Origin: Basidiobolus meristosporus CBS 931.73
Taxonomy: Eukaryota > Fungi > Basidiobolomycota
Length of the DNA: 64,000 nt
NCBI GenBank assembly: GCA_002104905.1
Contig: MCFE01000042.1
Location: 138,104-202,103 of the forward strand
Reading direction: 5' to 3'
The position numbers and the translations under genes were made by a program. Positions 43,883 through 64,000 of this stretch are shown here, piece by piece. Position 1 is the first letter of the stretch; each line of letters begins with the position of its first letter. The notes below the pieces were generated by a model. The model was given only the letters and a program-made list of their open reading frames with translations. It did no database searches and was not told the DNA's origin.

Positions 43883-44340
43883 GGGGGGGGGGAGACAGTC
43901 ATCAACAGGTGAAATCTTTACTTCAGTTAAAATAGAGAATCAAGAGCTACTGTTGTAGCTTTGATGCAAGAGTGTGTAGCTGTGGTGAATTGTTAGATAA
44001 GTTAACAAGTAGAAATGATAGCTCATCAGTGCTCAAGACACTGTTCAGTGAGAAGGGGGGTAGCAAGAGGGGTAAGAATGATTAGTCAACAACATTAATA
44101 AGGGAACATGATACAGAATGATACACATCATAAAGGGAGTGTGCTGCTTCAGATATTGCTGCCAAAGGTCTGTCAAGTATCTCAAGTAGGCCAGCTTGGG
44201 CTCTTCTGACTGCATAATATAATTGTTGTAAGAGTCTTGGAGATACTGGAAGTGATTGGGAGGACAAGTAGATTATGTGGTTTTCACTTAATGATTTATT
44301 GAATGTAAAAGTGGTATTTATACTTTTACCTGGTCTTGGC
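43883..44340 (-). mobile_element. Old, diverged 3' fragment of the non-LTR retrotransposon (copy A)
   Basis: Begins G10-agacagtcatcaacaggtgaaatc like the other copies, and aligns by eye, with many substitutions, to the last ~450 nt of copy B. Confidence 0.85.
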
Positions 44341-44566
44341 ATTACAAACACGTAGAATAGGTTACGGAAGGTCCCAAGAACATGTGTGCAAAGTTTGGGG
44401 CTGTTTGGACAACTTTGAGAGTTTTCATGTTCTGGGCACCTGGTATTTTGGTGAAAATATTCTAAGTAAATCCCAACAATGAATTTGGTCAGTATTCTCT
44501 AGAATTTGAAGGTGATGATCTAAGTGACTAAGTTAGGTGAATATTTGGGTTGAATTACAAATTTTA

Positions 44567-44598
44567 GGGGGGGGGGGAGACAGTCACCAACAGGTGAA
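44567..44598 (-). mobile_element. 21-nt mini-copy of the retrotransposon 3' terminus with its own G11 tract
   Basis: G11-agacagtcaccaacaggtgaa lies immediately before gggttaG9-acagtcaccaacaggtgaaatc (the end of copy B). Confidence 0.8.
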
Positions 44599-44665
44599 GG
44601 GTTAGGGGGGGGGACAGTCACCAACAGGTGAAATCTTTATTTCAGTTGAAACAAAGAAGCCAGCA

Positions 44666-47433
44666 CTACTGTTGTAGCTTTGATACAAGAGTGTGTAGCT
44701 GAGGGGAATTTGTAGGTAAGTTAATAAGAAGTGATGATAGTTCTTCAGTGCTCAAGACACTGTTCAGTGGGAAGGGGGCTAGCAAGAGAGGTAAGAATGA
44801 CTTGTGAACAACATTAATGAGGGGAATGTGATAAGGATTGATGTTCATCATAAAGGGAGTGTGCTGCTGCAGATATTGCTGCCAAAGGTCTGTCAAGTAC
44901 TTCAGGTAGGCCAGCTTGGGTTTTTCTGACTGCAGAATATAGTGTGCAAACTTCTTGACTTCAGGATCTCCAAGTATAGTTCTCCAGCAGGAGCCAGGTG
45001 TTGTGTGGTGTGTTCTCTTCCAGGCCTTAATCAGTGGGTTGTTGCAGTGGTGAAGTCTGAGATATAATCTGGTTCTAAGGTAGAGAAGTCTGATCTTATA
45101 GGGCATAAACCCAAAAGCACCAAGAATAGCATGTCTGTAGGGGCATTCAGGCAAATGAGTCACCAAGGAGGTAATGCACCATACTGCAAACTTGTCAAGC
45201 TTAGTGCAGTCTCTAGAAGTAAGAGAGAGAAGTGGTAAGCCAAATTCCAGGACAGGGAAGACAAACTGCTTGAGTAGAAGGAGGCAGCTGGGAGCTGAAG
45301 TTGTAGGAGGAGTAACAGCTAGTAGCTTGTGGAGTGCCTGTCTTGCCAGGATAATTCTCTTCTTCAGGTGTGCTCCAGAGTCTAGTCCAGTAGGAAGGAA
45401 AGGAAAGCCAAGATATGTAGCAGAAACCTGAGCAGGTAGAGTGGAGTTCTCCAGGTTGATGGGAGAGCCCAAAGGTACTGTCTTTGCAATGGAAAGCTGG
45501 AGATTATTCTTCTGCAGATACTGGTGGATGGTCTGGGAGTCTTGTTGCACATTGGAGGAGGATATTCTGATGTCATCAGCAAAGAGAGTAACCAGGCTGT
45601 CAGCTGAGAGTCTTGGGAAATCACTCAGGAAGATGGCAAACAGTATAGGACCAAGCACAGAGCCTTGAACCACTCCATTAGGAACTGAGAACACAGCTGA
45701 TTGCTCACTTGGGTGCAGAATTCTTGCTTGTGGATCCAGAAACAGAGACCTGATAAAGAGGGTGAGAGAGGTACTGGAGAAGCATTGCAACTTGGACCAA
45801 AGCAGATTTCTGTCAACTGAATCAAAGGCCTTAGTTATATCAAACAGAACAGAGGGATACTTGCACTGGAGAGAGTGATCTTGGCTAAGTATGACTGCAT
45901 ATTCCAAGGAGAGGCCAGGAACAAAGCCAAACTGTGCAGGATGAAACTTGAGGGAGTCAGAGTAGAGCTCCTGAGCAAGCAGAAGCTCAAACACCTTTCT
46001 GCAGGTGGGCAGCAGAGATATTGGCCTGTAGGAGCTAGGATCCAGGTGCTTTCCTTTACCCTTGTACAGTGGCAGAACATTTGCAAAGGACCATTCCTCA
46101 GGAGTAGAAAGCTGGGCTGAGCATTGCTGAAACAGTGGAAGCAGAAGTGCAGACATGGCCTTGGTACTAGTCTTCAGAAGCTCATAGGAGATTGTGTCCA
46201 CACCTGGAGCAGTAGAGTTGGGAAGCCTCTTGAGCACATTATGGATTCTCCTTTGATCAAGTGCAAGTGGGATGGGCAGAGTCTTGAAGTCAGGATGAAA
46301 GCCAGGAGTTGAGTACTGCTTTGTAGAGAAGAAGATGTTAGCCAGCTGTTCTGTTGAAGGTAACTTCCTGGAAGAGGGCCTCATTGCCCTGTAGAGTCTT
46401 GATACTGTCTTGTTATAGAGTTGGAAGATTGCAGAGGCAAGGAACTCATAATATGATCCCAGAGCTGAGTATGCAGAGTGTGGTGAATTGCCTTGGAGTG
46501 GTGTATTGCTGTCAGGAGGAGTTTCTCTGTTTTTGGGTTAGGGAAACTCAGGTAGCTTTGTTGCAGGGCTGAAACAATGGATTCCCATTTTCTTGAGGTA
46601 ACAGCAGTAGTCTTGCATGGCAGTGAGAGGGAGGCAGACACCAGAATCAGATGCTTCACAAAGAGCCAGGCATAGTTGAGATCATCTGGCAGAGAAAGTA
46701 GCAAACTGGCAAGCTTCAAGTAGTTCCCAAAGTCTTTCTTCTGATTCTTGGTAGCTTTGTGGGTGAGCACAGTAAGTTTTGGCAGCTTCTTCTTCACAAC
46801 TGGTTGCATAGAAAGGGACCAGGCTGGGTGGTCAGAGGCTCTGAAGGATCCTAGCTCAGCTCCAGAGAATTGCTTAACTTCATTCACAAAGTAGAGGGCA
46901 GCAGCAGAAGGGCAGATCCAGTCAACACATCTTTTCTCAGATTGAGCACCTAGTGCTAGCAGATGACTTTCTCTCAGGAAGTTCAGTAGGACTGTAGACC
47001 TTGGCTTCATTCTTGCAGTCAGAGTAGTCTTGTTCTCCGGATGGGGAATGTTGTGATCTCCAAGCAAGATAATAGGTGTTGATATAGATTGCTGGTATTG
47101 CTGAACATTCTGGCATATAACTTGCACTTCCTGAAGGGAGAGACTTGGAGGCAGATAGCAGAGCACCAGACTGATAGTTGGCAACTGGAGAGCAGCACAG
47201 TAAGGGGAGTAAAGAGGAACACAGAGCTGAGGAGTATTGATGGTAGAAGAGATGAAGCAGATAGAGGAGGTATTCTTTGTTCTAGGAGTAGAAAAGCAAT
47301 ATAGATTAGTCAAAAGTATAGAGGGTAGCTGGACATCAATCAAACACAGGAGGGAAAATCTTGAAAGAAGTCTCTCTAGAGTTGGTCTTGATGGCTGTAT
47401 GCTGTTGCAGTTAAGCAACAGAACTTCAGGTAG
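44666..47433 (-). CDS. LINE ORF2, APE endonuclease + reverse transcriptase (copy B; -1 frameshift at ~46385)
   Basis: APE: LLNCNS, CYLPP, GDHN, VDWI, SDH. RT: APGVDTISY, YRPISLLPTCRKVFE, QFGF, FDITKAFDSV, GVVQGSVLGPILF, FADD, YLG. Copy D reads through the position where B lacks one T. Confidence 0.92.
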
Positions 47434-48943
47434 TCAGGCAGAGGTTGTAGCTTCTTCAGAGACAGCATTGACAATGTGACCTGCAGAGTCCCAGAGCTCT
47501 TCAAATGGTGCATCACTTAAGTCAGCAAGGAGGGAAATGGCATGGTTCTTGAGGAAGTATGCCACATCATAGGAGGGTGCTTGTCTCTTGATGGCAGCAA
47601 AGAAAGACAGAATGGCAACATGGGCTGGAGGCTTGTTGAACAGTAGAGAGTCAGAGGATTCAGATTCTTCAGGCACTATCTTGAAGTCAGTTTTCAGCCA
47701 GTTAAGGTTCTTCTCCACAAAGGCAACAATTGGGTCAGCAATGTTTTGGTCTAGGATAACCTCCAGAATCTTCCCTTTTCTCCAGGCCAGGTTGACAATT
47801 CTTGAGAGCTGAATATTGCATGCCTTGAGTGCTTTCCTGATGTTGGAAATGGGAGTCCAGGGAACTTGCTTCAAGTACACCACAGTCCAGGTAGAAGCTG
47901 GTGGTAGGTTTGCTGGGGGCTTGTAAGTCCTTCTGTGTGGCAATGGAGCTGCAGTAGTCAGATTGGAGTCCACATTCTCAGTAGAGGGTTTTCTTGATGT
48001 GTCTTGCTGAATGGTACTGGAGCAGGATGTGCTGATAATTCTTGCTAGAACCTTGCCTGCATAAATCTGAGGTATAGCTGAGGTGACTGTATAGGTGGTG
48101 GCAGCTGGTGCAGGTGGAGAGGCAGAAACTGAAGCAGGAACTGAGGTCACCTGGGAGAAGGCAGTAGAAGCAGGTTTTCTGGGAGGAACAGAGTTCACTA
48201 TCCAGTTGTTCTGTAAAACACTGGAGTAGCTTTTCTGTGGAACAGGATCTTGCTCTTGAACAGGAACAGAAGCAGCAGGCTGGGGCTGAGCAGTAGTGGT
48301 AAGGCAGTGGCACTCCAAGGAAGCTTTTTGCAAGGCATCTCTGGCAGTTTTCAGGGCAGTGTTGGCTTCATTCTTGAGCTTCTTGCATTGGGCATCCAGT
48401 CTCTTGTTTTCAATAGTCCAGGGCAGTATTGGCAGCCTCTAAATCAGCAATTCTCTTCTCAATTGCAAGGAATCTCTGAAGAAATGCATCAGTAGAAGTG
48501 CTGGCATCTGGGAGAGCAGTGGCAGGAATAGACTCCATTGACAGTGGGCTTCTTGGAGGCAAGGAAAGTGGACTGGCAGATTCAGGCACAAAAGGAGATA
48601 TCCTGGCAGGAGGAGAAGGAGTATCCAAGGCAGTAACAGAGGCAATTCTTGTTGGTGAAGCAGCAGCAGGGGAGGCAGGCCTGTTCAGAAACTGGGCAGG
48701 AGAGAGTGCTTGAGGAGAGGGAGTCTTCAGCTTGCCAAGCATGTCTTCCATCAGAGTGATACCAATATTCCTGGTGCATTTGCAGAGAAAAGTAAGCTTC
48801 CTGAGTCTGCCAGCTCTTCCATTCCTTCTGATAGTTCCTTTGTTTCCACAGTTGGGGCAAGAAATCTTCTTGACAGACTTGTCAAAGCAATCAAGAACCT
48901 TCCTTTCAGGTGTAGTGGGCTCCTGTTGAGGTTTTGGGTGCAT
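47434..48943 (-). CDS. LINE ORF1 (N-terminal Cys cluster, Pro/Ser linker, coiled coil, C-terminal domain); +1 frameshift at ~48420
   Basis: ATG 48943 (MHPKPQQ), CPNC...CKC, low-complexity linker. Removing one G after ANTAL restores the coiled coil TIENKRLDAQCKKLKNEANTALKTARDALQK, which runs into the 299-aa track ORF ending EATTSA*. Confidence 0.75.
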
Positions 48944-49201
48944 ATCCAGAGTTTCAGCTTCAAATTTCAATTTTTGAGATTTTTGGGTGATTTTTGATGG
49001 GTGGGATCAAAATTAGGGTTAGGGTTGCGCGCTGTGACTGCTTTTTATGATCGCAAGGTCAGAACCTAGGAAAAAATAAAAATAGTTAGTAAAGGTGATT
49101 TAATGGATGGATGGATGGATTCGGAGTCAGATTCAATCAAAAAATCAAATCGTTGACTAATTTAAAGAGGGTAGGGTGTAGGGTTAGGGTTAGGGTGTAG
49201 G

Positions 49202-49505
49202 GGGGAGACAGTCACCAACAGGTGAAATCTTTATTTCAGTTGAAACAAAGAAGCCAGCGCTACTGTTGTAGCTTTGATACAAGAGTGTGTAGCTGAGGGG
49301 AATTTGTAGGTAAGTTAATAAGAAGTGATGATAGCTCTTCAGTGCTCAAGACACTGTTCAGTGGGAAGGGGGGTAGCAAGAGAGGTAAGAATGACTTGTG
49401 AACAACATTAATGAGGGGAATGTGATAAGGATTGATATTCATCATAAATGGAGTGTGCTGCTGCAGATATTGCTGCCAAAGGTCTGTCAAGTACTTCAGG
49501 TAGGC
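49202..49505 (-). mobile_element. 5'-truncated LINE copy C (304 bp) with 18-bp target-site duplication
   Basis: Near-identical to the last 300 nt of copies B and D. Flanked by TTAGGGTTAGGGTGTAGG at 49184-49201 and 49506-49523. Confidence 0.93.
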
Positions 49506-49552
49506 TTAGGGTTAGGGTGTAGGTGTTATAGTAAGGGCTAGAAAAAGGTTAG

Positions 49553-49636
49553 AAGAGCAGGGGGTCTGGGGGACGCAGTCCCCTAGAGAATAAAAAAGCA
49601 GGGGGTTTGGGGGATGCAATCCCCCATACTGCTCTT
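49553..49636. other. Pair of G/C hairpins with GCA loops inside an 8-bp outer inverted repeat
   Basis: GGGGAC-GCA-GTCCCC (49569-49583) and GGGGGAT-GCA-ATCCCCC (49609-49625), each preceded by AGCAGGGGGT. Outer arms AAGAGCAG (49553) and CTGCTCTT (49629). Confidence 0.75.
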
Positions 49637-50139
49637 ATACTCTTTAAATTCCCGTTGGATTACTTTTCTCTCATTCTTGGTTCTGGTCCCTTAGGGTTAG
49701 AATTCCTCCTCCTAACCCTTATCACCCTAACCATAAATATTTTTACCCTACAATTGGCACATTGTCTGCTCATATGGTGGGCATGTCTGGGCCAATATTT
49801 GTCTCCCTATACTGTCCATATGCTCTGTATAAGTCTTGATGACTATTTAATTAATAAATTGTTATTTTTAATATATATCTAATAATTAATGGGATTCATC
49901 CCAATCTGACCACAATCCCATATTTTGATAAGCTTCGGGCACCATAAATTGCGCGGCCCTAATATGATAAAAAAATTCATGGCCAATACAAATTTTCTGT
50001 AACCCGATTGCTTTTACCAAATATAAAGTGTATCCAAAAGTTCAATATATATTATGGCTATAATAGAAACTTTATTGGACACCATCGCAACTACTACTTA
50101 TGTTCTATGCGCACATGTATCCCGCGGGAATTGTAAAAC

Positions 50140-50930
50140 TTAGCCACGTGGTACAAAAGTGCTTTAATTTTTCATCATGATAGTTTTACATGAGTTCCTA
50201 ACGCACTTTGAAAGTACGCAGTAGCCATACCCCAACAGGTTTTAAGGATGTCCACTAGCTACGTCTACTTGTGTCTAGCGGGAGCCATCAATCATCAGCC
50301 GCGCAATACTGAAATGCTTTTATTTTTCATCATGCTAGTTTTGTATGAATCCCTAACGCACTTTCATAGTGCGCGGTAACCATACCCCAACAGGTTTTAA
50401 GGATACCCACTTGCTACGTTTACTTGTGTCTAGCGGGAGTCATCAATCATCAGCCGCGCGGTAAAAAAGTGCTTTTATTTTTCATCATGATAGTTTTACA
50501 TGAGTCCCTAATGCACTTTTATAGTGCGCGGTAACCATACCCCAACAGGTTTTAAGGATACCCACTTGCTACGTTTACTTGTGTCTAGCGGGAGTTATCA
50601 ATCATCAGCCGCGCGGTAATAAAGTGCTTTTATTTTTCATCATGATAGTTTTACATGAGTCCTTAACGCACTTTCATAGTGCGCGGTAACCATACCCCAA
50701 CAGGTTTTAAGGATACCCACTTGCTACGTTTACTTGTGTCTAGCGGGAGTTATCAATCATCAGCCGCGCGGTAATAAAGTGCTTTTATTTTTCATCATGA
50801 TAGTTTTACATGAGTCCCTAACGCACTTTTATAGTGCGCGGTAACCATACCCCCAGAAAGTAGTGTGGATGCTTACTTTAAACGCTCACTTGTGTATTGT
50901 ACGGAATATCAACAAACAGCCGCGTGGGAA
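50140..50930. repeat. Tandem array of about 5 x 155 bp
   Basis: The gcttt(t/a)...tttttcatcatg anchor recurs at 50161, 50316, 50471, 50626 and 50781. The central units are near-identical and the terminal units diverged. Confidence 0.95.
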
Positions 50931-51312
50931 TGGAACATCATAGAAAAGCATTGCTTTGTTGTTAGCAAGTATTGATGCGCAAATAGTGGTACTATGTGAA
51001 TTATTGAGTAACTATTTACTCTAGTTGGTTCCAAGATATTCCTAGACAATATGCTCAAAATCAATATTAGCATCAATAGCTTGCTCTTTGATCACTAAAC
51101 CACCGCACCCAATATGCGGTGGCCTTGGTTTTGTCTAGCCGTCGAGGAATGAAACCAGAGTACAGTCACAAGAGAGGCAAAAGTGAAATGTGATGAAGTA
51201 AGTGTATATGAAAGTAATATAAATCTACAGGACAGAAGAGAACAACTAGTAGTTAAACAGCACTCACTGACACTCCACCGAGTAGAGCACCAACACGGAC
51301 AATAAACAAGTC

Positions 51313-51774
51313 ATGAGGGGAAAGCTTAAGGACCGCTACTCGGGGATCAAGACCAAAAGAGGAAGCTGCCTCTACCATAGCAGTCCTCGCGCTCCAAAGG
51401 AAGACCAAGAGTCTATTATAGACAAAGATTGCGGCGAGAAGAGCAGTACAATTACCAGTTCTGGTAGTGGTACCTTTGGAAGTCCCGAATACCTGGAGAA
51501 AACTCGGAAAAAATTGGCAGATGACTCAGTTGTCCTGAGGAGAAAACGAACCAATGCGATTGAGCAGTTCCGAAACGAACTTCAGCTTAGTTCTTCTTTG
51601 CCTCACTATAAAGTACTCCAAGTGGCTTATTTTGATTATAAGCGTATGAAGGAGAATCAGGCAGAGACTGATAAATTAAGTGATAGTCAATTGCATCACT
51701 TCTTAGATCAGGTAGAGAAACAGTCGCACAGCCAAGAGACGGAACAAGAATTGACGATTACAGAAACCAAATAA
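51313..51774 (+). CDS. Hypothetical protein (153 aa, basic/helical)
   Basis: ATG-started ORF followed by AATAAA-like signals; no family recognised. Confidence 0.45.
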   Translation: MRGKLKDRYSGIKTKRGSCLYHSSPRAPKEDQESIIDKDCGEKSSTITSSGSGTFGSPEYLEKTRKKLADDSVVLRRKRTNAIEQFRNELQLSSSLPHYKVLQVAYFDYKRMKENQAETDKLSDSQLHHFLDQVEKQSHSQETEQELTITETK

Positions 51775-52006
51775 TTTTGCCAATGTAGTTTTGCATTTTA
51801 ATAAAATAAAAGGGTGTTAATAAGAACAGAATAAAGTTAACTTATGTGTACATCAAATGATTCAAATACTGGCTAGATGGATGTTACGTAGGAGCAAGAA
51901 GCTCAGTAACCTCAAAGGAAAGATATGATGAATGGGCCACCGACATCATCCGAATGAGTATAAAAGTGGAGAAAGGAGACATAATCCTTCATAAAAAACA
52001 AGAAGC

Positions 52007-52792
52007 ATGGAAGCAGGCAGTAGCCGGGTAGATGCCAGGAGTGAAGGTAGAGTACAAAGAGAGCGAGGAAGGGGACAAGGACGCGGAAGAGGACGCGGAA
52101 CCGGGCGCGGAAGAGGAAGAGGGCAAGGAAGTGGCCAAATCCAAGAGGAGCGTGAAGGAGGTGTTGCAGCAAACGTGGATGATGCTGAGCAAGTTGCTGT
52201 AGTCACTACCAGGCGGCCGGTCAACCAAGTTTCCCAAGCATTGTCAGAGGTTCGACAAGAGCTTCCGGAATATAGGACAACATCGCACCATGAGATATTG
52301 CGACGTATGTGCCAGGAGATTAAACAGAGGAGGGGTGATATTGTAAAGCTAAATCGGGATATTGCTGGACTTCAAGCCCAGATTGATTTCAGTTTCCACC
52401 ATTCTACTGAGGCATTAGTGGCACAAATGGTGGAAAAGTTTGCCCGCATCAGGGCAAGCGATGAGCAGGATGCATCTTCCGACCCAGGTGTACTTGCGAG
52501 CGACAGTATTGGAGGGGATACTACTTCCTCCCTCGAACCTACCACAAGCCAAGAGACAAGAGCAGAATCCTCCACAACAATGAGAATGGCCCCCACGCAG
52601 GTTGATATGGAAGTGTGCGAAGAAGACGTGGAGAAGCAGAGTGGGGATACTATAGGCCAACCAGAAACTGTAATGGAGGCGGAGAGACCAAGTCATATTG
52701 TCATCTTAAAAATACCACAGGTTGATTCATCGCTATCACTTCCCCCATCATCACTATCTGTGCCCCCATCACCACCGCCATCCTCTGGCTAA
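52007..52792 (+). CDS. Hypothetical protein (261 aa) with RG/GRG-rich segment and coiled coil
   Basis: GRGQGRGRGRGTGRGRGRG tract (possible nucleic-acid binding), predicted coiled coil EIKQRRGDIVKLNRDIAGLQAQID, acidic and Pro-rich tail. Confidence 0.5.
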   Translation: MEAGSSRVDARSEGRVQRERGRGQGRGRGRGTGRGRGRGQGSGQIQEEREGGVAANVDDAEQVAVVTTRRPVNQVSQALSEVRQELPEYRTTSHHEILRRMCQEIKQRRGDIVKLNRDIAGLQAQIDFSFHHSTEALVAQMVEKFARIRASDEQDASSDPGVLASDSIGGDTTSSLEPTTSQETRAESSTTMRMAPTQVDMEVCEEDVEKQSGDTIGQPETVMEAERPSHIVILKIPQVDSSLSLPPSSLSVPPSPPPSSG

Positions 52793-52983
52793 CTTGAGTA
52801 AATAAAGAATTTCCACCATCCCAAATCAATGAATTGACAAGTAATAAGTTGAACTGATAAGATTGACGATTTACAGACTAATATATGTAAAGTATGTAGT
52901 ACTTAAGAGCTTTCAAGTTGTGGTGTATTATCAAGTATTCACCGTCACATAAATCACGCAGCAGTTGTTGTATCCCTATCCCA

Positions 52984-55812
52984 ATGGCATTAGAAGCCAG
53001 CAGTTACAAGGAGCATCGGAAAAATTTTGGCGTTTACCTGGCGACGGTGGCAGGTGTAACAAAACGCAGCTATTGCTCGATGACCATTACCCCGTCTATG
53101 AGATACTTGCTATTATATGGAGGGTATTCTGTTGAGCACTTTCAAGACAGCAAAATATCCCCGCCTTATGATGAGCGTATAGCTGAAGAAACATCCGGCC
53201 GTGGAATACTCTATGAGCCCAGCTCAAAGGTTCAAATGATTCACCTTGCAGATCTACACGGTGATGAAGACATCACAGTGACAGTTCTCCCGACTCCAGA
53301 CAACATATCAACTACAGAGGCAGCCAAAGGGGTGATTTTAATTGGCAACAGCTGTGCTAGTGACCACGAGAATCTCTACATATATGGTGGTTTTGAGCTG
53401 AGCCGTAGAGAATACTCAGGGCGACATGAAAGTGCCAAAAAACGGGGGAAAAAAGCGATACGAAGCAAGAGTGGGGAGACAATCAATAGAAGACTGAGCA
53501 AGCTGGAGGTAATCACGTACAAAGATGGCAATGGATGCTCCAGAGTATTGGAGACAAGGCCATTCTTGAATAATCCTGCGAATATGCCTTCAGCAAGAGG
53601 TTGGGCAGTTCTTACGTACGCATTTGATTGCTTATTCTTGCTGGGCGGCTATCCTACACCATCGGAACCACCTTATACCCAACCAAATGGGAGTTTTTTA
53701 AACGAGTTCTACTGTTTAAAATTGCGAACTGGTGATTGGGAAAGACGATATGTACACTCAGCAATACAGGAGCTTGGAGAAAACTTTATTGCTGTGGTAA
53801 ACGAGTATGGCAACCAAATCCAATACATCAACAATGCAAATGTTACATTCACCTATGATGTCGATAATCAGATCTGGACTTACCCTCCCGATCCAAGTCA
53901 GGAAGAAATGAGTACAAAGCAGCTACTAGGGCGCATTCTTAATGAATTGGCAGCAATCTCTCAGCGGCACGAGAGGGAAGGCGAAGGAAGTGCTGAGACT
54001 GAAAATATCTTGCGGCATAGTGCCCATGGTCTTACTGTCCCACTTAAGAACCATCAAGCATTTGGCGTACGATGGCTGATGTATACAGAGGCCATCCATA
54101 AAGGAGCATTGCTTGCCGATTCCATGGGACTTGGAAAGACATTGCAGATATTAAGTCTCATATTGGAGACACCTGAGCAAAGGCCAAATCTTATTGTTGT
54201 CACGCTTGGAATACTTCTCAATTGGGTGATGGAGATAAAGACAAAAACAAGGATATCCGATGAAGAGCTTCATGTATTTCATGGAAAATTCCGAGCTATC
54301 AAGAAGTCAGATATGGAGACTAAGAGGATCGTGCTCACCACCTACCACACACTATGTGTTGAAGCAAGGAACCCTGATTCGCCTATATGGAATGTGAAAT
54401 TTGGCCGAATAGTGGCCGATGAGGCAGATACACTTAAGAACTACGAAGGCGGTAGCTTAAACGCAGTGAGTAAAATTGATGGAGAATCCTTGATACTTGT
54501 CACTGCCACCCCATTCCAAAATGAGATTATGGATCTTTATTCATATTTCACATTATTCAATCTATGGGAAGGTATTCCAAAGGATTTCCATCGACTCCTA
54601 CTTGAGGAGGCCAATGCAAACAGGCTAGTTGAATGGGTTGTAGAAAGACTTGGCCCATTAATATTGAGACGCGTTCCAGAGTCGCAAATATTTGGAGAAC
54701 GCGCAGTATCCATGCCTAGTATTCAAGAGCAGATTGTCTTGTGCCAATTCTTGCCGGAGGAGCTGCAGGAGTACAAACAACTGCAGTCAAGTCTTCCAGA
54801 GGAAGTCGGTCGGATGGGTGCAAATACCTATCTGCGTCTGTACTCATGCCATCCATATATGTATACCTGGAGCAGGAAGAGGAATCGACTGAAAAAAGCG
54901 GCTGATGCTAGCATTGTCCAAGATGTCGAGATGAGTGAGGATGATTTTCTACCTGAGATTGATGAGGATCTTGAGGCGGTTGCGGTTGAGGTTGAGGAGC
55001 AGCTTCAAGAGATTAATAGCGAAGAGGTTGACAGCTCATCCAATGTTCCATCTACTTCTGCACCAACTGCCATACGCACCGAAGACGCCCCTACAATTGC
55101 CCAAAGAGGGCTTGCGTTAGAGGACTCCAACAGGGTATTCATCCAAGATTTCCTCACTGGTGTAACCAACAACACTGTGAACGAGCATAGTGGCAAAACT
55201 CGGAAAATCATGGAAATCCTGCTTGAAATCCAAGAAAATAAGGAGCACGCACGTGTTATTATTTTTTCTGGGTTTAATCTGATGCTTGACATAGTGGCTT
55301 ACCATTTGAGGGAGCAGAGCATTGAACATCTGAAGATTACCGGTTCCACCCCAGTTCGGATACGAAAGAGCAGTATAGATACATTTGCATTGCCAGTTCC
55401 GGAGGGCGAGATTTGTGTGTTACTGATCAACATCAAATGTGGCGCATTTGGATTAAATTTGCAGATGGCATCGGCGGTGATCATTGCCGACAATTGGTGG
55501 AATCCCTATGTAGAAATCCAAGCGAAGGCCAGAGTTTGGAGGGTGAATCAACCAAATAATGTTTCTAGTTACCAGTTAGTCATGCAAGATTCCATTGAAG
55601 CTCAGGGTGTAATTGACAGTCAAACTCGTAAGATTGGCTTATTTGGCCAGATTACGCATACGTTGGTAGATGAAGCATCCGAAGTACCAATTTCATTACA
55701 ACTTCAAGAGCAAGATGATCGGTACTTGAGCCAATTACATGAAGCGCAAGGCAGTGGATCTCTGATGCACGAAGATGAAGAGGAGGTTGATGAGACGACA
55801 GATGAGGAGTAA
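52984..55812 (+). CDS. Kelch-like beta-propeller fused to SWI2/SNF2-family ATPase
   Basis: Intronless. N-terminal LLLYGG / LYIYGG / LFLLGG repeats with Kelch-like spacing. SNF2 motifs: LADSMGLGKTLQ, IVADEAD, TATPFQNE, IIFSGF, GAFGLNLQMASAVIIADNWWNP, QAKARVWRVNQ. Confidence 0.85.
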   Translation: MALEASSYKEHRKNFGVYLATVAGVTKRSYCSMTITPSMRYLLLYGGYSVEHFQDSKISPPYDERIAEETSGRGILYEPSSKVQMIHLADLHGDEDITVTVLPTPDNISTTEAAKGVILIGNSCASDHENLYIYGGFELSRREYSGRHESAKKRGKKAIRSKSGETINRRLSKLEVITYKDGNGCSRVLETRPFLNNPANMPSARGWAVLTYAFDCLFLLGGYPTPSEPPYTQPNGSFLNEFYCLKLRTGDWERRYVHSAIQELGENFIAVVNEYGNQIQYINNANVTFTYDVDNQIWTYPPDPSQEEMSTKQLLGRILNELAAISQRHEREGEGSAETENILRHSAHGLTVPLKNHQAFGVRWLMYTEAIHKGALLADSMGLGKTLQILSLILETPEQRPNLIVVTLGILLNWVMEIKTKTRISDEELHVFHGKFRAIKKSDMETKRIVLTTYHTLCVEARNPDSPIWNVKFGRIVADEADTLKNYEGGSLNAVSKIDGESLILVTATPFQNEIMDLYSYFTLFNLWEGIPKDFHRLLLEEANANRLVEWVVERLGPLILRRVPESQIFGERAVSMPSIQEQIVLCQFLPEELQEYKQLQSSLPEEVGRMGANTYLRLYSCHPYMYTWSRKRNRLKKAADASIVQDVEMSEDDFLPEIDEDLEAVAVEVEEQLQEINSEEVDSSSNVPSTSAPTAIRTEDAPTIAQRGLALEDSNRVFIQDFLTGVTNNTVNEHSGKTRKIMEILLEIQENKEHARVIIFSGFNLMLDIVAYHLREQSIEHLKITGSTPVRIRKSSIDTFALPVPEGEICVLLINIKCGAFGLNLQMASAVIIADNWWNPYVEIQAKARVWRVNQPNNVSSYQLVMQDSIEAQGVIDSQTRKIGLFGQITHTLVDEASEVPISLQLQEQDDRYLSQLHEAQGSGSLMHEDEEEVDETTDEE

Positions 55813-55984
55813 ATAGGGGTTGCAATGTACCAGGAATCAAGTATGCCAGACTCGAGGTAGTAGTAGCTACTATTGGTAAATAAACAATGAGACTAATCTT
55901 TTTGCACGAGAAGGGTGGGAGAGGGAGAGGGAGAGAGAAAAGTCAGAGTGGTACAGTCTAAATAAAAAAGGGTGCGAGAGTTTT

Positions 55985-56318
55985 ATGGTGATGAAGATAA
56001 ACATGCATTTGGTGCCGCGCGGTGGTGTTGGGGATTCATCGGGCACAAATGAAAGTGCGATGCTAGAATATAGTGATGAGAATAACCATAGGTTTGGTGC
56101 CGCGCGGTGCCAATTTGGTATTGAGATTCATCAGGCACAAATGAGAGTGCGATACTAGAATATGGTGATGAGAATAACCATAGGTTTGGTGCCGCGCGGT
56201 GCCAATTTGGTATTGAGATTCATCAGGCACAAATGAGAGTGCGATACTAGAATATGGTGATGAGAATAACCATAGGTTTGGTGCCGCGCGGTGCCAATTT
56301 GGTATTGAGATTCATCAA
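55985..56318. repeat. Tandem array of about 3.6 x 92 bp
   Basis: ctagaat recurs at 56063, 56155 and 56247; the first unit (~55985-56062) is diverged. Each unit contains gtgccgcgcggt. Confidence 0.95.
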
Positions 56319-56549
56319 TATGCGGTAATGAATGATTTGATATGTGCCTTCGTTGGATGGATGACATGCGTTAGTTGGTACTAAAATAGTCTACTCCAAC
56401 AAAAACCGCAGGGTATGCCCCCGTGTCTGTTTCATGGGGTTCAGTAAATCACCCAGGGCTATATAAAAATGAAGACCTCTTCTGTAAGGTATTCAGACAC
56501 AGACGCGAGAGTTAGTGAAGTACTTGAATCTTACTCACAATTGTAAGCA

Positions 56550-59200
56550 ATGGACTTTCAGTTAGGCAAGAAGTCTTACCTAAGGTAAGTTGAGCTTTGA
56601 AGATTCTAGAAAGGACTTGAGCGTCTTGGTCGCTGCTAATAGCATTCAAGTAAGAACTGATTTGGTGGCAATTGTGCGCTAGGGTTGGAAGCAATAGCAC
56701 ATCTGGGCAACATATATTCATTGAGAATAACTACTGTCAGGCTGCTAGAACTTCCTCCGGATCCCAAAGCGCTTTACACTTAGAGCAGGGCAAGAGCAGT
56801 CACCAGCATGGACAATGCGTAAATCCCAGAAAGAGAACGCGACGTGGCAAAAAACATTCCCGAGCCAAGAAGAACAGAAGGGTAGCACTAAATGGGGAAG
56901 TACGCATTTTAGGAATGAGGCAGGTGATGGAAACATCGGTTGCAACGCAGAAAGGGCAGCAAGAAAAGAGCACCCAACCTGGATTGAAAGGCGGTGATAC
57001 TTGCAGAGTAGGCATGGTGCGTGAATATCTGGGTGAAAATCAGGATCCTGGAAATGATTTTGGCGACCTTGATGTGGGCAACCTTGATGTGGATATCATG
57101 AGTAGTGAATACAGCACAGATCGGGGATCCATTGGGGGCATATCAGAGGAGAACATTGCCCAAGCAACAATTCGAGTGGCATCAAATGGTGATCATTCAA
57201 ACGGGCTTAGTAATTGTTGCACAACCACAGGGGAAGAAAGAAGCACTGAGAAGCCACATGGCCTACCGCACACTGCACGTGGTACAAGAGGCAGAAGGGA
57301 GCAATTTGTAAGCAATGAAAATATCAACGTGGTCATTGAAGATTTAATACTCGAGCAAAATGAGGTCCAGCGTACTGAAGGAAGAGTGTCAATTGCGGAA
57401 ATTGAAAGAGCGGCTAGAAGCATAATACTGCCCACCTTAGCCCATTCCGATGAGGGCAATAGCGCTGTGGAAGCTGAGACTACAAGTGGACTGGTGGGAG
57501 GAGCCTTGTCTCTTAATAAAGTATCAGCAGCGGGCTCTGGATACTTTTCTACCAAAGGAGCACTTGATCTGGACCAGGCTGCGCAGCTTGGGGGGTTACT
57601 TCAGCACTATAACACACCAATGAATGAATCTGAATCGGCACTTATCAATATCATGAGGGCTGAGTTCATGAATTTTTGGCTGGAGAAATTTTACCAAGAG
57701 CCAGAAAAAATGTCTCGAATTTCCCATGGGAACCGTGGTCTTAAGGGGTTATCGTGCACGCAGGCAAATGTTTACTGGAATTCGACAATCAAGCAGTTCA
57801 TTTTGTTTTCCATGCGCCTATGCCAACCGGATATAAGAAGCCCTCAGGCGTATTGGGCTGTAGTGGGGGTGAAGGCCAACGTAGACTCCTACTTGATGCT
57901 ACGAAAGGGTAGGCACGGTTCTGCGCCACTGAGTGCATCCACTTTGAACAATATCTTTCATCATTTAATGAAGGCAGTATATCTTTACAATATTTGCTAC
58001 AATCCAAAGACAAAAGACAAGCCGCATGTACGCTGTGATGTGGAGATGCATCTACGCGCACTAGGTAGTGTAGCTGGGCGATTGAAAAACCAGCATACTT
58101 TTGAACGAAGGCAAAAGCGAGTGACTGAATGTACCAGGGAAGAGGAAGCACCAACTACTCAAGAAGTGGGATTTTTATTTTCTCGGCTTCTTGAGAGTAT
58201 GCAAGCTATATTGGAGACAGTGCTTCCGAGGGGTGAGTTGAATTATGAGGTGGTTCAAAACGAAAATTACACAAAGCAGCAGCAATATTCACTTGGGAAG
58301 TGGAGCTTTGTCACAACACCAATGGAAAAGTTAATTGCGCATCTAAAGGAGAGTTTGAGGTGTGAGCAAGCATACCGGCTGCTCCAACAGCTGACAATTA
58401 GGTATCAGCAGTTGCTCTACGCAGCAATTCGGATTTCTGCACCTTGCCGACGTTGTAAACCTTTTGCTCATATGCTGCTGCACTCTTCGCAGAGGCATGC
58501 GGATAAGGACAGCAGGTATTCTGGAGAGCGAAATATTCTATATGATCCAAAGCAGGAGAGATTTCATCTGGAGCTAGTGGAAGACAAGAGACCGGGAGGG
58601 AGAGGAGTCACCCTGCCTTTAGAGCTAACAAAGTTTGTTATCTTTTGGATCTCGATGTTGCGTCCGGTGCTAGTTGTTTGCCAGTCCCATCCCTATTTTT
58701 TTAGTCGCCCAAACGGCAGAGATGGCCTAGATCCCCAGAGAACTGGACACCTATTTGAGGGAGCAATTAGACAAGTCTATACCAATTCTAACCGCACATT
58801 TGATCAACGAGACTTGCGACGTTGGTGTTCCAGCTACGGCATATCCTCTGGTCTTGTTGACGAATATGCGGCGGCTATGAACCATCACCCTTCGACAGCA
58901 CGTCAAATTTATGCTCCACAGACTCAAGAGTCACTGGCTAATATTGCAATAGAGCACTATCAACAAAATGTTCTCGAAAGTAGTACTGCTAATGCTACTT
59001 TGGGGAACAATTCTAAGCAAACATTAAGCGCTGCTGATGGTGATACAGACAACAACACTCTGGCATCTCAGTTGGCGGATCGGTTGCCAAGTTTACCAAG
59101 GAGAAGTGGAAGAAACGTTTCAAGGAACATGGGTCCGGCAAGGAGTGCACCAAGGAATCAGGTGGTGGAGGTGGAGGTGGAAGTAGTGGTGGGGATTTAA
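56550..59200 (+). CDS. Large protein with C-terminal tyrosine-recombinase-like (phage integrase fold) domain
   Basis: Core-binding-like LSASTLNNIFHHLMKA. Catalytic-like order R (APCRR), K (EDKR), TLPLELTKFVIFWISMLRP, YFF, xxLRR (QRDLRR), H and Y (AAAMNHHPSTARQIY). Possible ATG 56550 with intron 56585-56682 (GTAAGT...CTGAT...CTAG) joins in frame; otherwise first ATG 56915. TATA-like TATATAAAAA at ~56460. Confidence 0.65.
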
Positions 59201-59796
59201 TGCGAACTCAAATAAACTGGTATATACATACCATTTGACTGGATAACCCCCCCCCCCGTTGGCTATATCTGACACAATGTTCTTGGCTCCCGGAGGGAAA
59301 ACGAACACTAGTTTGCAGTATTCCAACAATCCTGCCCTGCCTCTACCATTCCGTGGTGTATTTTCTTCCCAATTCCTTCAGTAGTTAATTTCAGCAGCGA
59401 TGAGGGGGGCGGGAAGATTTGCATTGTATTTGCCATCAGCCTACATGATGTAATGACCACGTCAGCAGGGTGTAGTCAAGCTTTGCAATGTGAAGCTAAT
59501 TTTGCAAGACCATCTGCATTGGTTCTACTGTGCAGTTGGCGTTCCATTTCCGATTTGCCATTTGCTTAATTCCATGCTTATGGCAGTACGGCACTGAATT
59601 AGCTGTCACATTGCCAATAAAATTGCATCCCTACCCCCCCTGAAACATGTTACGTGACTACGTGCTAAATCTACCCTTTGGCCTTCCACATGGATTATGA
59701 GAACCTTTCCAGCAAAAGCTCTGAGAGATGGTTACTTTGCGGTGTGTGCATACTACTTTCGAGTACGTGGACTAGCACAGAGGTCTACACAATTAT

Positions 59797-60126
59797 TTGT
59801 CAGCACTGTGCTTGCACATGTGCGATAACAAGCGCATTTTATTGAGCTTGGACGCTTTTGCTCTAACAATTGTCAGCACTGTGTTCGCACATGTGCGACA
59901 GCAAGCACTTACATCGGGCTTGTCTTGGACGCAATTTGCTCTAATTGTTGTGGACTTTGGTGAGGCCTACGTTTAGAAGGGGTGCGGAGCACCACTTTGG
60001 CTAGTTTACGCTTTGTCAGCACTGTGTTAGCACATGTGCGACAGCAAGTACCAGTTCTTGGGCTTGTAAGCGTTTCTCTTTAGGAGAGGCTGGTCATTGT
60101 GTGTAGCCTGCTGTTAGCATACGTGC
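59797..60126. repeat. Dispersed direct repeats containing the perfect palindrome GCACATGTGC
   Basis: ttgtcagcactgtg(c/t)t(t/c/a)gcacatgtgcga at 59797, 59870 and 60013, plus a degenerate copy gcatacgtgcga at ~60117. Confidence 0.9.
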
Positions 60127-60811
60127 GAAATACGGCCTTGACTCGCTTCGTGTAATCACTATTCTTCCTGGTCCTATGTCCAGGAAAGGTAGCAAGCATT
60201 CTCCACAGCGGCAGTGCTTGGGACAGTAGTTCTGGTTGTTGTTTGAGTCGGTGTGTTTCAGCCGCGAAGCCAAATGGCTGCTTATCTGACCGAAGGGTAA
60301 TCTTTGAAGAAGAAGTACTTTGGTGCCAAGTGCTCTCTTTTTTTGTTGATGTGATATCTGCAAACAACAGAAACATTGACAATATATGCTATGTGCTCTA
60401 TTTACATAAGAGTCATTGTCCTGCTAACTATCTGCAGTGTGCAAATCGAGTATATTGAAGGAAGTAGGACAGACTCTGGTAGCTGTATGAGTCCGAACCT
60501 ACTGGTGAAGCTGTAGTATGCAGGTGCAGATCACTGGAAAGTACAGTAGGCAGTAACGGCTAGTGTGCAGTGTGGGTAGGCAGGTACGGAATAGGTGCGT
60601 TCACAGTAGCCAGGTACAGATACAGTGCAGTTCATGAGCAAGCAACTGAATATCTGATGAGTCAAGATAATACTAGTCAAGTTATGTAGACTGTAGTCAC
60701 ATATATGAAGTAGTACTAGATCATATGATAAGGTATAGTAGTCTTAGGTTAGGGGGGAGACAGTCACCAACAGGTGAAATCTTTATTTCAGTTGAAACAA
60801 AGAAGCCAGCG

Positions 60812-63582
60812 CTACTGTTGTAGCTTTGATACAAGAGTGTGTAGCTGAGGGGAATTTGTAGGTAAGTTAATAAGAAGTGATGATAGTTCTTCAGTGCTCA
60901 AGACACTGTTCAGTGGGAAGGGGGGTAGCAAGAGAGGTAAGAATGACTTGTGAACAACATTAATGAGGGGAATGTGATAAGGATTGATATTCATCATAAA
61001 GGGAGTGTGCTGCTGCAGATATTGCTGCCAAAGGTCTGTCAAGTACTTCAGGTAGGCCAGCTTGGGTTTTTCTGACTGCAGAATAAAGTGTCAGCAAACT
61101 TCTTGACTTCAGGATCTCCAAGTATAGTTCTCCAGCAGGAGTCAGGTGTTGTGTGGTGTGTTCTCTTCCAGGCCTTAATCAGTGGGTTGTTGCAGTTGTG
61201 AAGTCTGAGGTATAATCTGGTTCTAAGGTAGAGAAGTCTGATCTTATAGGGCATAAACCCAAAAGCACCAAGAATAGCATGTCTGTAGGGGCATTCAGGC
61301 AAATGAGGCACCAAGGAGGTAATGCACCATACTGCAAACTTGTCAAGCTTAGTGCAGTCTCTAGAAGTAAGAGAGAGAAGTGGTAAGCCAAATTCCAGGA
61401 CAGGGAAGACAAACTGCTTGAGTAGAAGGAGGCAGCTGGGAGCTGAAGTTGTAGGAGGAGTAACAGCCAGTAGCTTGTGGAGTGCCTGTCTTGCCAGGAT
61501 AATTCTCTTCTTCAGGTGTGCTCCAGAGTCTAGTCCAGTAGGAAGGAAAGGAAAGCCAAGATATGTAGCAGAAACCTGAGCAGGTAGAGTGGAGTTCTCC
61601 AAGTTGATGGGAGAGCCCAAAGGTACTGTCTTTGCAATGGAAAGCTGGAGATTATTCTTCTGCAGATACTGGTGGATGGTCTGGGAGTCTTGTTGCACAT
61701 TGGAGGAGGATATTCTGATGTCATCAGCAAAGAGAGTAACCAGGCAGTCAGCTGAGAGTCTTGGGAAATCATTCAGGAAGATGGCAAACAGTATAGGACC
61801 AAGCACAGAGCCTTGAACCACTCCATTAGGAACTGAGAACACAGCTGATTGCTCACTTGGGTGCAGAATTCTTGCTTGTGGATCCAGAAACAGAGACCTG
61901 ACAAGGAGGGTGAGAGAGGTACTGGAGAAGCATTGCAACTTGGACCAAAGCAGATTTCTGTCAACTGAATCAAAGGCCTTAGTAATATCAAACAGAACTG
62001 AGGGATACTTGCACTGGAGAGAGTGATCTTGGCTAAGTATGACTGCATATTCCAAGGAGAGGCCAGGAACAAAGCCAAACTGTGCAGGATGAAACTTGAG
62101 GGAGTCAGAGTAGAGCTCCTGAGCAAGCAGAAGCTCAAACACCTTTCTGCAGGTGGGCAGCAGAGATATTGGCCTGTAGGAGCTAGGATCCAGGTGCTTT
62201 CCTTTACCCTTGTACAGTGGCAGAACATTTGCAAAGGACCATTCCTCAGGAGTAGAAAGCTGGGCTGAGCATTGCTGAAACAGTGGAAGCAGAAGTGCAG
62301 ACATGGCCTTGGTACTAGTCTTCAGAAGCTCATAGGAGATTGTGTCCACACCTGGAGCAGTAGAGTTGGGAAGCCTCTTGAGCACATTATGGATTCTCCT
62401 TTGATCAAGTGCAAGTGGGATGGGCAGAGTCTTGAAGTCAGGATGAAAGCCAGGAGTTGAGTACTGCTTTGTAGAGAAGAAGATGTTAGCCAGCTGTTCT
62501 GTTGAAGGTAACTTCCTGGAAGAGGGCCTCATTGCCCTGTAGAGTCTTGATACTGTTCTTGTTATAGAGTTGGAAGATTGCAGAGGCAAAGAACTCATAA
62601 TATGATCCCAGAGCTGAGTATGCAGAGTGTGGTGAATTGCCTTGGAGTGGTGTATTGCTGTCAGGAGGAGTTTCTCTGTTTTTGGGTTAGGGAAACTCAG
62701 GTAGCTTTGTTGCAGGGCTGAAACAATGGATTCCCATTTTCTTGAGGTAACAGCAGTAGTCTTGCATGGCAGTGAGAGGGAGGCAGACACCAGAATCAGA
62801 TGCTTCACAAAGAGCCAGGCATAGTTGAGATCATCTGGCAGAGAAAGTAGCAAACTGGCAAGCTTCAAGTAGTTCCCAAAGTCTTTCTTCTGATTCTTGG
62901 TAGCTTTGTGGGTGAGCACAGTAAGTTTTGGCAGCTTCTTCTTCACAACTGGTTGCATAGAAAGGGACCAGGCTGGGTGGTCAGAGGCTCTCAAGGATCC
63001 TAGCTCAGCTCCAGAGAATTGCTTAACTTCATTCACAAAGTAGAGGGCAGCAGCAGAAGGGCAGATCCAGTCAACACATCTTTTCTCAGATTGAGCACCT
63101 AGTGCTAGCAGATGGCTTTCTCTCAGGAAGTTCAGTAGGAATGTAGACCTTGGCTTCATTCTTGCAGTCAGAGTAGTCTTGTTCTCAGGATGGGGAATGT
63201 TGAGATCTCCAAGCAAGATAACAGGTGTTGATATAGATTGCTGGTATTGCTGAACTTTCTGGCATATAACTTGCACTTCCTGAAGGGCAAGACTTGGAGG
63301 CAGATAGCAGAGCACCAGACTGATAGTTGGCAACTGGAGAGCAGCACAGTAAGGGGAGTAAAGAGGAACACAGAGCTGAGGAGTATTGATGGTAGAAGAG
63401 ATGAAGCAGATAGAGGAGGTATTCTTTGTTCTAGGAGTAGAAAAGCAATATAGATTAGTCAAAAGTATAGAGGGTAGCTGGACATCAATCAAACACAGGA
63501 GGGAAAATCTTGAAAGAAGTCTCTCTAGAGTTGGTCTTGATGGCTGTATGCTGTTGCAGTTAAGCAACAGAACTTCAGGTAG
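60812..63582 (-). CDS. LINE ORF2 APE-RT (copy D; frameshift near 61090 relative to B)
   Basis: 839-aa continuous APE+RT frame (GDLN, SDH, FADD); the C-terminal 76 aa lie in another frame. Confidence 0.92.
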
Positions 63583-64000
63583 TCAGGCAGAGGTTGTAGC
63601 TTCTTCAGAGGCAGCATTGACAATGTGACCTGCAGAGTCCCAGAGCTCTTCAAATGGTGCATCACTTAAGTCAGCAAGGAGGGAAATGGCATGATTCTTG
63701 AGGAAGTATGCCACATCATAGGAGGGGGCTTGTCTCTTGATGGCAGCAAAGAAAGACAGAATGGCAACATGGGCTGGAGGCTTGTTGAACAGTAGAGAGT
63801 CAGAGGATTCAGATTCTTCAGGCACTATCTTGAAGTCAGTTTTCAGCCAGTTAAGGTTCTTCTCCACAAAGGCAACAAATGGGTCAGCAATGTTTTGGTC
63901 TAGGATAACCTCCAGAATCTTCCCTTTTCTCCAGGCCAGGTTGACAATTCTTGAGAGCTGAATATTGCATGCCTTGAGTGCTTTCCTGATGTTGGAAATG
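63583..64000 (-). CDS. LINE ORF1 3' part (copy D, truncated by window)
   Basis: Same sequence as ORF1 of copy B, ending ...EEATTSA-TGA at 63583. Confidence 0.8.
   Translation of the reverse strand, partial: ISNIRKALKACNIQLSRIVNLAWRKGKILEVILDQNIADPFVAFVEKNLNWLKTDFKIVPEESESSDSLLFNKPPAHVAILSFFAAIKRQAPSYDVAYFLKNHAISLLADLSDAPFEELWDSAGHIVNAASEEATTSA

Follow-up and report, generated by a model that had tools for sequence, protein, structure and literature searches.

A repeated four-gene element encoding an SNF2 ATPase and a probable tyrosine recombinase at chromosome ends of Basidiobolus meristosporus

What kind of DNA is the 11.2-kb block of four genes that lies close to the end of contig MCFE01000042.1 in the fungus Basidiobolus meristosporus CBS 931.73? 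The window, by which we mean the whole 64,000-nucleotide stretch analyzed here, is the terminal 64 kb of that contig, as established by an exact look-up of the first open reading frame (ORF1) of the block. An earlier note, made from the letters of the window, had marked positions 49524-60745 as an unclassified candidate mobile or virus-derived element. Our analysis indicates that the block is very probably one copy of a repeated, four-gene, telomere-associated element of Basidiobolus, whose plus-strand ORFs encode an SNF2 ATPase, a probable tyrosine recombinase (YR) and two small proteins. This recombinase-SNF2 element is a previously undescribed kind of telomere-associated element, and is neither a virus nor a set of ordinary host genes. 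The family is specific to chromosome ends; it is similar to Y′ and TLH repeats in architecture and nearest to Crypton-type YR elements in gene content, and it falls within no described family. The parts of the window copy are as follows.

49500-49515, plus (G) strand: short telomere-type tract on the left flank, 0 to 3 units depending on the copy.
49516-60743, plus strand: the complete element, a family-A copy of 11,228 bp in which all four ORFs are open; the other five copies are 97-99.5% identical.
49516-49740, no strand assigned: left-terminal region, the sole non-coding DNA kept between families A and B.
51313-51774, plus strand: ORF1, 153 amino acids, no known domain.
52007-52792, plus strand: ORF2, 261 amino acids, an N-terminal RG-rich run followed by a conserved central segment.
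52918-55812, plus strand: ORF3, predicted divergent SNF2-family ATPase, 964 codons, first ATG at 52984.
56672-59200 (open frame), plus strand: ORF4, 842 codons, last gene of the element.
60744-60757, plus strand: telomere-like tract and G run, which form the tail of the following long interspersed nuclear element (LINE).

The four co-directional ORFs and three repeat systems described in the earlier note were all recovered in place, and the ends it gave are right to within a few bases, with the constant sequence starting at 49516 and the right end at 60743. TTAGGG-type tracts at 49170-49200, 49500-49515 and 60744-60757 flank the element on both sides, and the right end of the window copy abuts the telomere-like tract and the 3′ end of a LINE. 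The sequence TAGG is common to both boundaries, but both flanks are telomere-type repeats, so this sharing is uninformative. Three aspects of the setting lay outside the note, namely the position at a contig end, the minus-strand LINEs on both sides and the TTAGGG-type tracts. GC skew climbs sharply from 44 kb onward in the window. No gene has been called in the right-hand 1.5 kb of the element, and Rfam and tRNA scans of window positions 40-64 kb gave no matches.

That the block is discrete and multicopy is borne out by its relatives. Six copies, which we call family A, lie on six contigs (MCFE01000042.1, the window; MCFE01001193.1; MCFE01000376.1; MCFE01000048.1; MCFE01000348.1; MCFE01000386.1), each at the contig end and each with different host genes upstream. 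Three of the five other copies are at least 99.4% identical to the window copy, and two have diverged by 2-3%. A single, deeply divergent copy at the end of the largest contig, MCFE01000001.1 (locus L004), represents family B; in it the four ORFs recur in unchanged order, with amino-acid identities to family A of 39% for ORF1, 49% for ORF2 (over residues 61-141), 52% for ORF3 and 45-60% for ORF4. A third lineage is represented by a 303-amino-acid homologue of ORF4 in B. ranarum, which is 61% identical to family A and 68% identical to family B, while all other database relatives of ORF4 are hypothetical proteins of B. meristosporus CBS 931.73. All seven element-bearing contigs carry their copy at the end and always in one orientation, which is not the picture of single-copy, syntenic host genes that the earlier note had named as its own refutation.

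The family-B contig also reveals the direction of the chromosome end. Upstream of its copy are a truncated LINE and two TTAGGG units. Downstream, a degenerate telomere-like tract is followed by an ABC-transporter fragment and then by two LINE pieces, and the contig closes with 36.5 TTAGGG units. The copy stands 5 kb from this terminal (TTAGGG)36 telomere. This arrangement places the telomere beyond the right-hand edge of the window, with the element genes reading towards it.

The element has an invariant left terminus, where the constant sequence begins at 49516 with GGTGTAGG in family A and with GGTATAGG in family B. Eight left junctions could be compared, from the six family-A copies, the family-B copy and a left-end fragment of 117 nt immediately preceding a full copy. 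All eight share a layout in which unrelated upstream DNA gives way to 0-3 telomere units and then to the identical terminus. The DNA upstream of the junctions consists of LINEs truncated at differing points, another LINE family or other sequence. Two of the eight junctions have neither a canonical telomere unit nor homology, yet begin at the same base, an observation more readily reconciled with a discrete element end than with homologous recombination.

The left 225 nt of the window copy match positions 3104-3314 of L004 in family B with 75.6% identity. This region holds degenerate telomere-like units, two units each composed of G5-N3-G5 and a GCA-loop hairpin, and C-strand telomere-like motifs at 49711-49732, and it folds far better than shuffled sequences, with z scores of -3.7 as DNA and -4.8 as minus-strand RNA. 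GCA-loop hairpins had been reported to precede the cassette. They are indeed present, at 49569-49583 and 49609-49625, but they lie within the left end of the element. The second of them is identical in family B. Four G5 runs at 49560-49613, separated by gaps of 3, 28 and 3 nt, overlap both hairpins on the telomeric G strand and could form a G-quadruplex. Telomere-like motifs in both orientations are found at 49688-49732, with CCCTTAGGGTTAG followed by CCTAACCCT and CACCCTAACC. These motifs are located about 200 nt inside the left end and are kept in family B (L004 3288-3312), and in predicted folds they pair with the flanking telomere tract.

Comparison of the two families points to selection on the encoded proteins. 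For all four ORFs the proportion of synonymous differences (pS) is saturated at 0.75-0.95, while the proportion of nonsynonymous differences (pN) is 0.24-0.46 (0.39 for ORF1), as expected under strong purifying selection. The low pN with saturated pS implies that the four proteins have long been kept functional as a linked set, and selection has preserved them in two deeply split families and in two species. Individual copies nevertheless decay. Relative to the window copy, L001 has a single stop in each of ORF2 and ORF3, and its ORF4 region contains three frameshifting indels. In L002 a single stop interrupts ORF2, and frameshifting indels number four in ORF3 and two in ORF4. L007 has one frameshifting indel within the covered part of ORF3. 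Substitutions in the older copies L001 and L002 are mostly nonsynonymous. The family-B copy is itself interrupted: ORF3 changes frame at least twice, and ORF4 changes frame at least once and contains one stop. As judged from these reading frames, the pattern is that of a mobile-type family with few putatively active copies and many decaying ones.

ORF4 is the candidate recombinase gene. Its JGI model (828 amino acids, one intron, 56550-59200) adds a short upstream exon to the open frame. The protein probably has a YR-type catalytic domain, and the candidate domain occupies roughly the final 220 residues ahead of a low-complexity tail. This label is based on catalytic-type residues at canonical spacing and on the name that UniRef gives to the B. 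ranarum homologue, 'Tyr recombinase domain-containing protein', which is a source annotation rather than a test run here. When the family-A, family-B and B. ranarum sequences are aligned (by inspection, with no statistic attached), a Lys located in D-K-R-P-G-G, the motif R-x-x-R, a His and a Tyr are invariant, and a box-I-like Arg in an I-R-I-S-A-P motif is kept in both sequences that cover that site. The Arg and His of ORF4 are spaced by 23 and the His and Tyr by 8. The invariant columns of a comparator bacterial YR family (PF00589) show a spacing of 23 from Arg to Trp and 9 from Trp to Tyr, and canonical YR enzymes have spacings of 23 and 9 as well. The comparator is the family of a plasmid 'tyrosine-type recombinase' lying beside an SNF2 match, with PF00589 confirmed and 41 relatives. 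Thus the earlier guess of a YR is plausible from the conserved residues and the UniRef name, but no direct test confirmed a YR fold. ORF4 matches none of PF00589 (Phage_integrase), DUF3435 (PF11917) and DUF3504. In the P0001 model of ORF4 the conserved C-terminal motif is lost through a predicted intron, which may explain why only the B. ranarum protein receives the Tyr recombinase label in UniRef.

The assignment of ORF3 is firmer. Both lobes of the predicted SNF2-family ATPase score above curated Pfam thresholds, with SNF2-rel_dom (PF00176) at E 2.5e-33 and 115.9 bits (cut-off 24.9) and Helicase_C (PF00271) at E 2.8e-16 and 60.2 bits (cut-off 23.5), and the ATPase core is intact judged by profile coverage. 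Among PDB sequences, 80 SNF2 remodellers match with E values below 1e-10, the best being fission-yeast Fft3 at 4e-35, and no RecQ family match was found. The best NCBIfam profiles are bacterial SNF2 helicases with E values near 1e-48, far under the equivalog cut-offs, and the nearest database proteins are about 30% identical, many of them bacterial. Basidiobolus is known for bacterial gene acquisitions, and together with the closeness of bacterial profiles and proteins to the SNF2 core this makes a bacterial horizontal origin of the core possible. Whereas the SNF2 part of the 'Kelch-SNF2' assignment in the earlier note stands, the Kelch part is not borne out. The N-terminal ~350 residues are weakly Kelch-like (PF24681, E 6.5e-5, 22.8 bits against a gathering cut-off of 50; Kelch_4, 21.7 bits against 21.6 and one repeat only), and this portion has no sequence match in the PDB. 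Public annotation over ORF3 consists of just a 74-amino-acid Helicase_C model, though a 964-codon frame is open.

The profile searches proposed for the four proteins thus yielded a family for ORF3, while for ORF1, ORF2 and ORF4 none of Pfam, NCBIfam and PHROGs gave a match. The ORF1 protein is identical on four contigs. Reverse transcriptase (RT), capsid and polymerase are absent from the ORFs of the element in the same three collections, in agreement with the earlier note, which had seen no RT, capsid or polB.

Several further components are specific to family A.

50142-50853, no strand assigned: 155-bp tandem array, 4.6 copies, TRF score 1200, with a GCGCGGT core twice per unit.
55984-56317, no strand assigned: 92-bp tandem array upstream of ORF4, 3.1 copies at 56033-56317 (score 542) plus a partial unit.
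59796-60075, no strand assigned: three 39-nt repeats, each with GCACATGTGC, the first also with GCACTGTGC.

The GCGCGGT core is common to both tandem arrays, which contain 11 of its 15 occurrences in the window (1.8 expected). The 92-bp array contains the palindrome CCGCGCGG, and GCACATGTGC occurs three times, at 59814, 59887 and 60030, where 0.08 occurrences are expected. Neither tandem array has a counterpart in family B, nor do the GCACATGTGC (GCAC) palindromes. This absence rules out the arrays, which the earlier note proposed as binding sites, as core parts of the element. The length of the 155-bp array, compared between the window and copies L001, L002, L006, L007 and L008, varies even among near-identical copies, which have about 4.6, 3.6 or 2.6 units as estimated from BLAST offsets.

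The element sits amid minus-strand copies of one retrotransposon lacking long terminal repeats (non-LTR), which encodes an endonuclease (PF14529) and an RT (PF00078).

43879-44221, minus strand: older LINE fragment of the same non-LTR family.
44564-49169, minus strand: LINE neighbor, comprising a 34-nt LINE stub and then a full-length APE and RT LINE at 44598-49169 with a telomere-repeat 3′ tail.
49201-49499, minus strand: fragment of 300 nt from the 3′ end of the same LINE, with a telomere tract on either side.
60758-64000, minus strand: LINE copy whose 3′ end abuts the element and which is cut short by the end of the contig.

Each of the two long LINE copies in the window has one frame interruption, which in the 44564-49169 copy falls in the endonuclease-RT frame. 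Across the window and related loci, each of the 11 LINE 3′ ends sampled has 1-3 TTAGGG-type units with a G run ahead of it on the plus strand, and all 11 have the same orientation. The LINEs form head-to-tail terminal arrays in the window and at L002, L004, L006 and L007, and the family is apparently a telomere-tailed or telomere-targeting one, here in an early-diverging fungus. Other DNA is found in these arrays as well. At L004 14532-15379 on MCFE01000001.1 there is an ABC-transporter-like gene fragment, cut off and with LSGGQ and Walker B motifs on the minus strand. It is capped by a telomere unit and a LINE, and a degenerate tract near L004 13258-13280 parts it from the family-B element; a fragment capped in this way is evidence for healed breaks and captured DNA in the arrays. 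A further repeat that is neither LINE nor cassette is shared with 87-89% identity by the window (44222-44563), L002 (459-735) and L007 (6080-6403). Also, the 3′ end of a second, related LINE family, with a similar terminal motif and a different body, lies directly before a cassette copy at L001 3032-3350.

How, then, does the element come to be at so many chromosome ends? We favor, with a probability of roughly 0.4, an autonomous, chromosome-end-specific DNA element that spreads by means of its own recombinase. Such an element may mobilize itself and would be copied as DNA between chromosome ends. The very divergent YR-like protein encoded by ORF4 would link the structured left end, which carries telomere-like units in either orientation, to telomere repeats, whether terminal or interstitial, and a possible intermediate would be a form freed by recombination between flanking repeats. 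The SNF2 ATPase would open or remodel telomeric chromatin or DNA for joining, ORF1 and the RG-rich ORF2 would act as accessory nucleic-acid-binding factors, and the family-A arrays upstream of ORF1 and ORF4 would serve as lineage-specific regulatory sites. The recombinase route is preferred because the terminus is joined without homology, the structured left end is conserved and the recombinase-like gene has been maintained for a long time. It is somewhat unlikely, on present evidence, that the family constitutes a new superfamily of eukaryotic YR DNA elements that uses chromosome ends as a safe haven, in which a very divergent YR, with the help of an element-encoded SNF2 motor, joins a telomere-like terminus to telomere repeats, and which helps to build the chromosome ends beside telomerase and telomere-tailed LINEs.

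A number of observations weigh against spread by an encoded recombinase. Pfam searches at E values up to 10 gave no match for ORF4, the family-B fragments or the B. ranarum protein; PDB searches with the ORF4 sequence and with profiles of A/B and A/B/ranarum gave none either; and an exhaustive phmmer search with ORF4 residues 300-800 against 1.84 billion representatives revealed no relative outside Basidiobolus. Aligning ORF4 profiles with the atypical bacterial YR family by hhalign, a weak test, gave a probability below 1%. Two AlphaFold2 models of ORF4, made from alignments of 3-5 sequences, have mean pLDDT values of 34.4 and 37.7 and are too poor for a fold search. In ORF4 an Arg replaces the canonical His of H-x-x-R, and the hairpin loops of 3 nt are below the size of a classical YR crossover spacer. 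In the window copy there are no direct or inverted repeats between the two ends beyond chance, and the right ends of families A and B show no similarity on comparison. Only one family-A right end is present in the data, since all other family-A contigs stop inside the element, and with these features a two-ended recombination site is not demonstrated. Moreover, copies were located through their proteins, which under-samples short fragments, and the near-identity of four copies and a conservation limited to the centromere-proximal end fit passive host recombination or an RNA route equally well.

The first of these two routes is that of a passive, Y′-like subtelomeric repeat, propagated by host break-induced replication or gene conversion starting in the left telomere tract. 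Its genes would be host-useful or selfish passengers, acting perhaps in telomere chromatin or back-up telomere maintenance, and the recombinase-like protein would be dispensable for spread. We regard this as somewhat unlikely, and as the next most probable route. It accounts for the location at chromosome ends, the fixed orientation, the telomere tracts on either side and a left boundary that is shared where the right end is not conserved and terminal repeats are lacking. Homogenization also predicts the identity of at least 99.4% among four copies on separate contigs, and the ABC-transporter fragment between telomere tracts in the family-B array suggests that the arrays are patchworks of healed or captured ends. 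However, homology at the junctions is tiny (0-14 nt), and the two junctions that lack a canonical unit nonetheless begin at the identical base. Homologous invasion would not be expected to leave a 117-nt left-end fragment in front of a complete copy, nor does this route explain long purifying selection on a linked recombinase-like gene. The second route, which we consider distinctly unlikely, employs the LINE machinery. A minus-strand read-through transcript ending in the left telomere tract would pair with the G overhang of a chromosome end and be reverse-transcribed at that place, in the manner of the LINEs; it could start in the LINE that abuts the right end, and the plus-strand genes would ride in antisense. 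The left junctions are styled like all 11 of the LINE 3′ junctions, with variable upstream DNA, 0-3 units and a constant end, and the conserved end of the element has the same polarity as the LINE 3′ ends. The 117-nt left-end-only fragment resembles a 5′-truncated copy, in the window the right end is immediately adjoined by a LINE 3′ end, and the left end folds strongly as minus-strand RNA (z -4.8). Yet the left end of the element and the LINE 3′ end have no sequence in common, and the minus strand has no ORF and, near the end, no poly(A)-type signal. We know of no precedent for an 11-kb antisense intermediate with four selected genes, which counts against this route, and selection on the four ORFs would be unexplained if they were passive cargo. 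All sampled copies but one exceed 2 kb where most LINE copies are shorter than 1.2 kb, but this comparison is biased because copies were ascertained through proteins, and we dropped it as an argument.

Two further explanations are less probable. Subtelomeric gene families are common, and an ordinary host gene cluster duplicated on several ends, with no element behavior, would agree with the selection on the proteins and with their JGI annotation as hypothetical host genes. This is very unlikely, given an exact common left terminus beside unrelated sequences, the retention of both the four-gene order and the terminal 225 nt in two old families, the presence of decaying copies, and an ORF4 whose homologues among the 1.84 billion representatives are confined to Basidiobolus. 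Least probable of all, to the point of being barely credible, is an endogenized DNA virus or Polinton-like element. SNF2 helicases and YRs do occur in some large DNA viruses, and ORF3 matches PHROG 62, 'DNA helicase', at 4e-52, though this is a generic SNF2 match and the only kind of PHROG match obtained. Against a viral origin, which the earlier note had entertained, Pfam, NCBIfam and PHROGs give no match for any ORF to families of capsids, packaging ATPases, polymerases or integrases. An ORF4 profile found no relatives among 2.9 million contigs of IMG/VR or among JGI metagenome contigs, tblastn of ORF4 found none in phage records, and the conserved left-end 25-mer was not found in the metagenome and IMG/VR scans. 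Furthermore, there are only four genes and their context is strictly telomeric.

Among described systems, the known residents of chromosome ends are telomerase repeats, telomere-specific retrotransposons and helicase-bearing subtelomeric repeats such as Y′ and TLH. The Basidiobolus element resembles the Y′ repeats of Saccharomyces and the TLH RecQ regions in being a multi-kb repeat that is confined to chromosome ends in fixed orientation, exists as near-identical, homogenized copies, has telomere tracts on both sides and encodes a superfamily-2 ATPase or helicase; this likeness is one of architecture, compared by description and not by sequence homology. TLH regions have been described in Magnaporthe, Ustilago, Fusarium and fission yeast (e.g. 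PMC1635262). In contrast to these, the Basidiobolus ATPase is of the SNF2 type rather than a Y′ helicase or RecQ, the unit includes three additional conserved genes of which one is recombinase-like, its tracts comprise 0-3 units, and it resides inside a LINE array.

Cryptons are eukaryotic DNA transposons that encode a tyrosine recombinase (PMC13465315, with definitions of YR element classes). The present element is like them in lacking RT, terminal inverted repeats and long terminal repeats, in having a YR-like protein as its sole candidate recombinase and in belonging to an early-diverging fungus. However, it has four genes in 11 kb and is telomere-specific, where Cryptons have a single gene in 3-7 kb, and its ORF4 falls outside the YR Pfam families and has no relative beyond Basidiobolus in the exhaustive HMMER search. 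By sequence, then, the element appears to belong to no described Crypton lineage. TATE, VIPER and DIRS are YR-encoding retroelements, of which TATE is telomere-associated in trypanosomatids (PMC6681497, PMC3783388). They have RT, RNase H and split or inverted terminal repeats, whereas the element in Basidiobolus has neither RT nor terminal repeats. No RVT or RNase H match was found in the four ORFs, which sets the element apart from DIRS, Ngaro, VIPER and TATE.

Telomere-specific retroelements include SART/TRAS, MoTeR and Athena/Terminons. FoTeR is another such element (PMC12857005). Ordered head-to-tail arrays at chromosome ends and joins through short telomere repeats are features they share with the present locus, where the flanking LINEs behave in this way, but the cassette itself lacks RT, and its genes, unlike those of the LINEs, are read in the direction of the telomere. 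Starships likewise combine a YR-type gene with additional genes in one mobile unit. They differ in being confined to Pezizomycotina, a different phylum, and in having a DUF3435 captain at the 5′ end; in the Basidiobolus element there is no match to PF11917, the YR-like gene is last, and the unit is far smaller and telomeric. Literature searches on Basidiobolus telomeres and Cryptons, on YR and SNF2 genes at telomeres, and on TLH and TATE brought up no description of such an element.

This element unites the architecture of Y′/TLH repeats, a recombinase-like gene and a discrete terminus in one array with telomere-tailed LINEs, and from a poorly studied fungal phylum it contributes two orphan lineages, one of SNF2 and one of YR-like proteins. 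To our knowledge, a mobile-element origin of Y′/TLH repeats has long been suspected and never shown. If spread by the encoded recombinase is the true account, the element would illustrate, in a living case, how mobile DNA can give rise to helicase-bearing subtelomeric repeats, and would constitute a DNA-level counterpart of the telomere-targeting retroelements.

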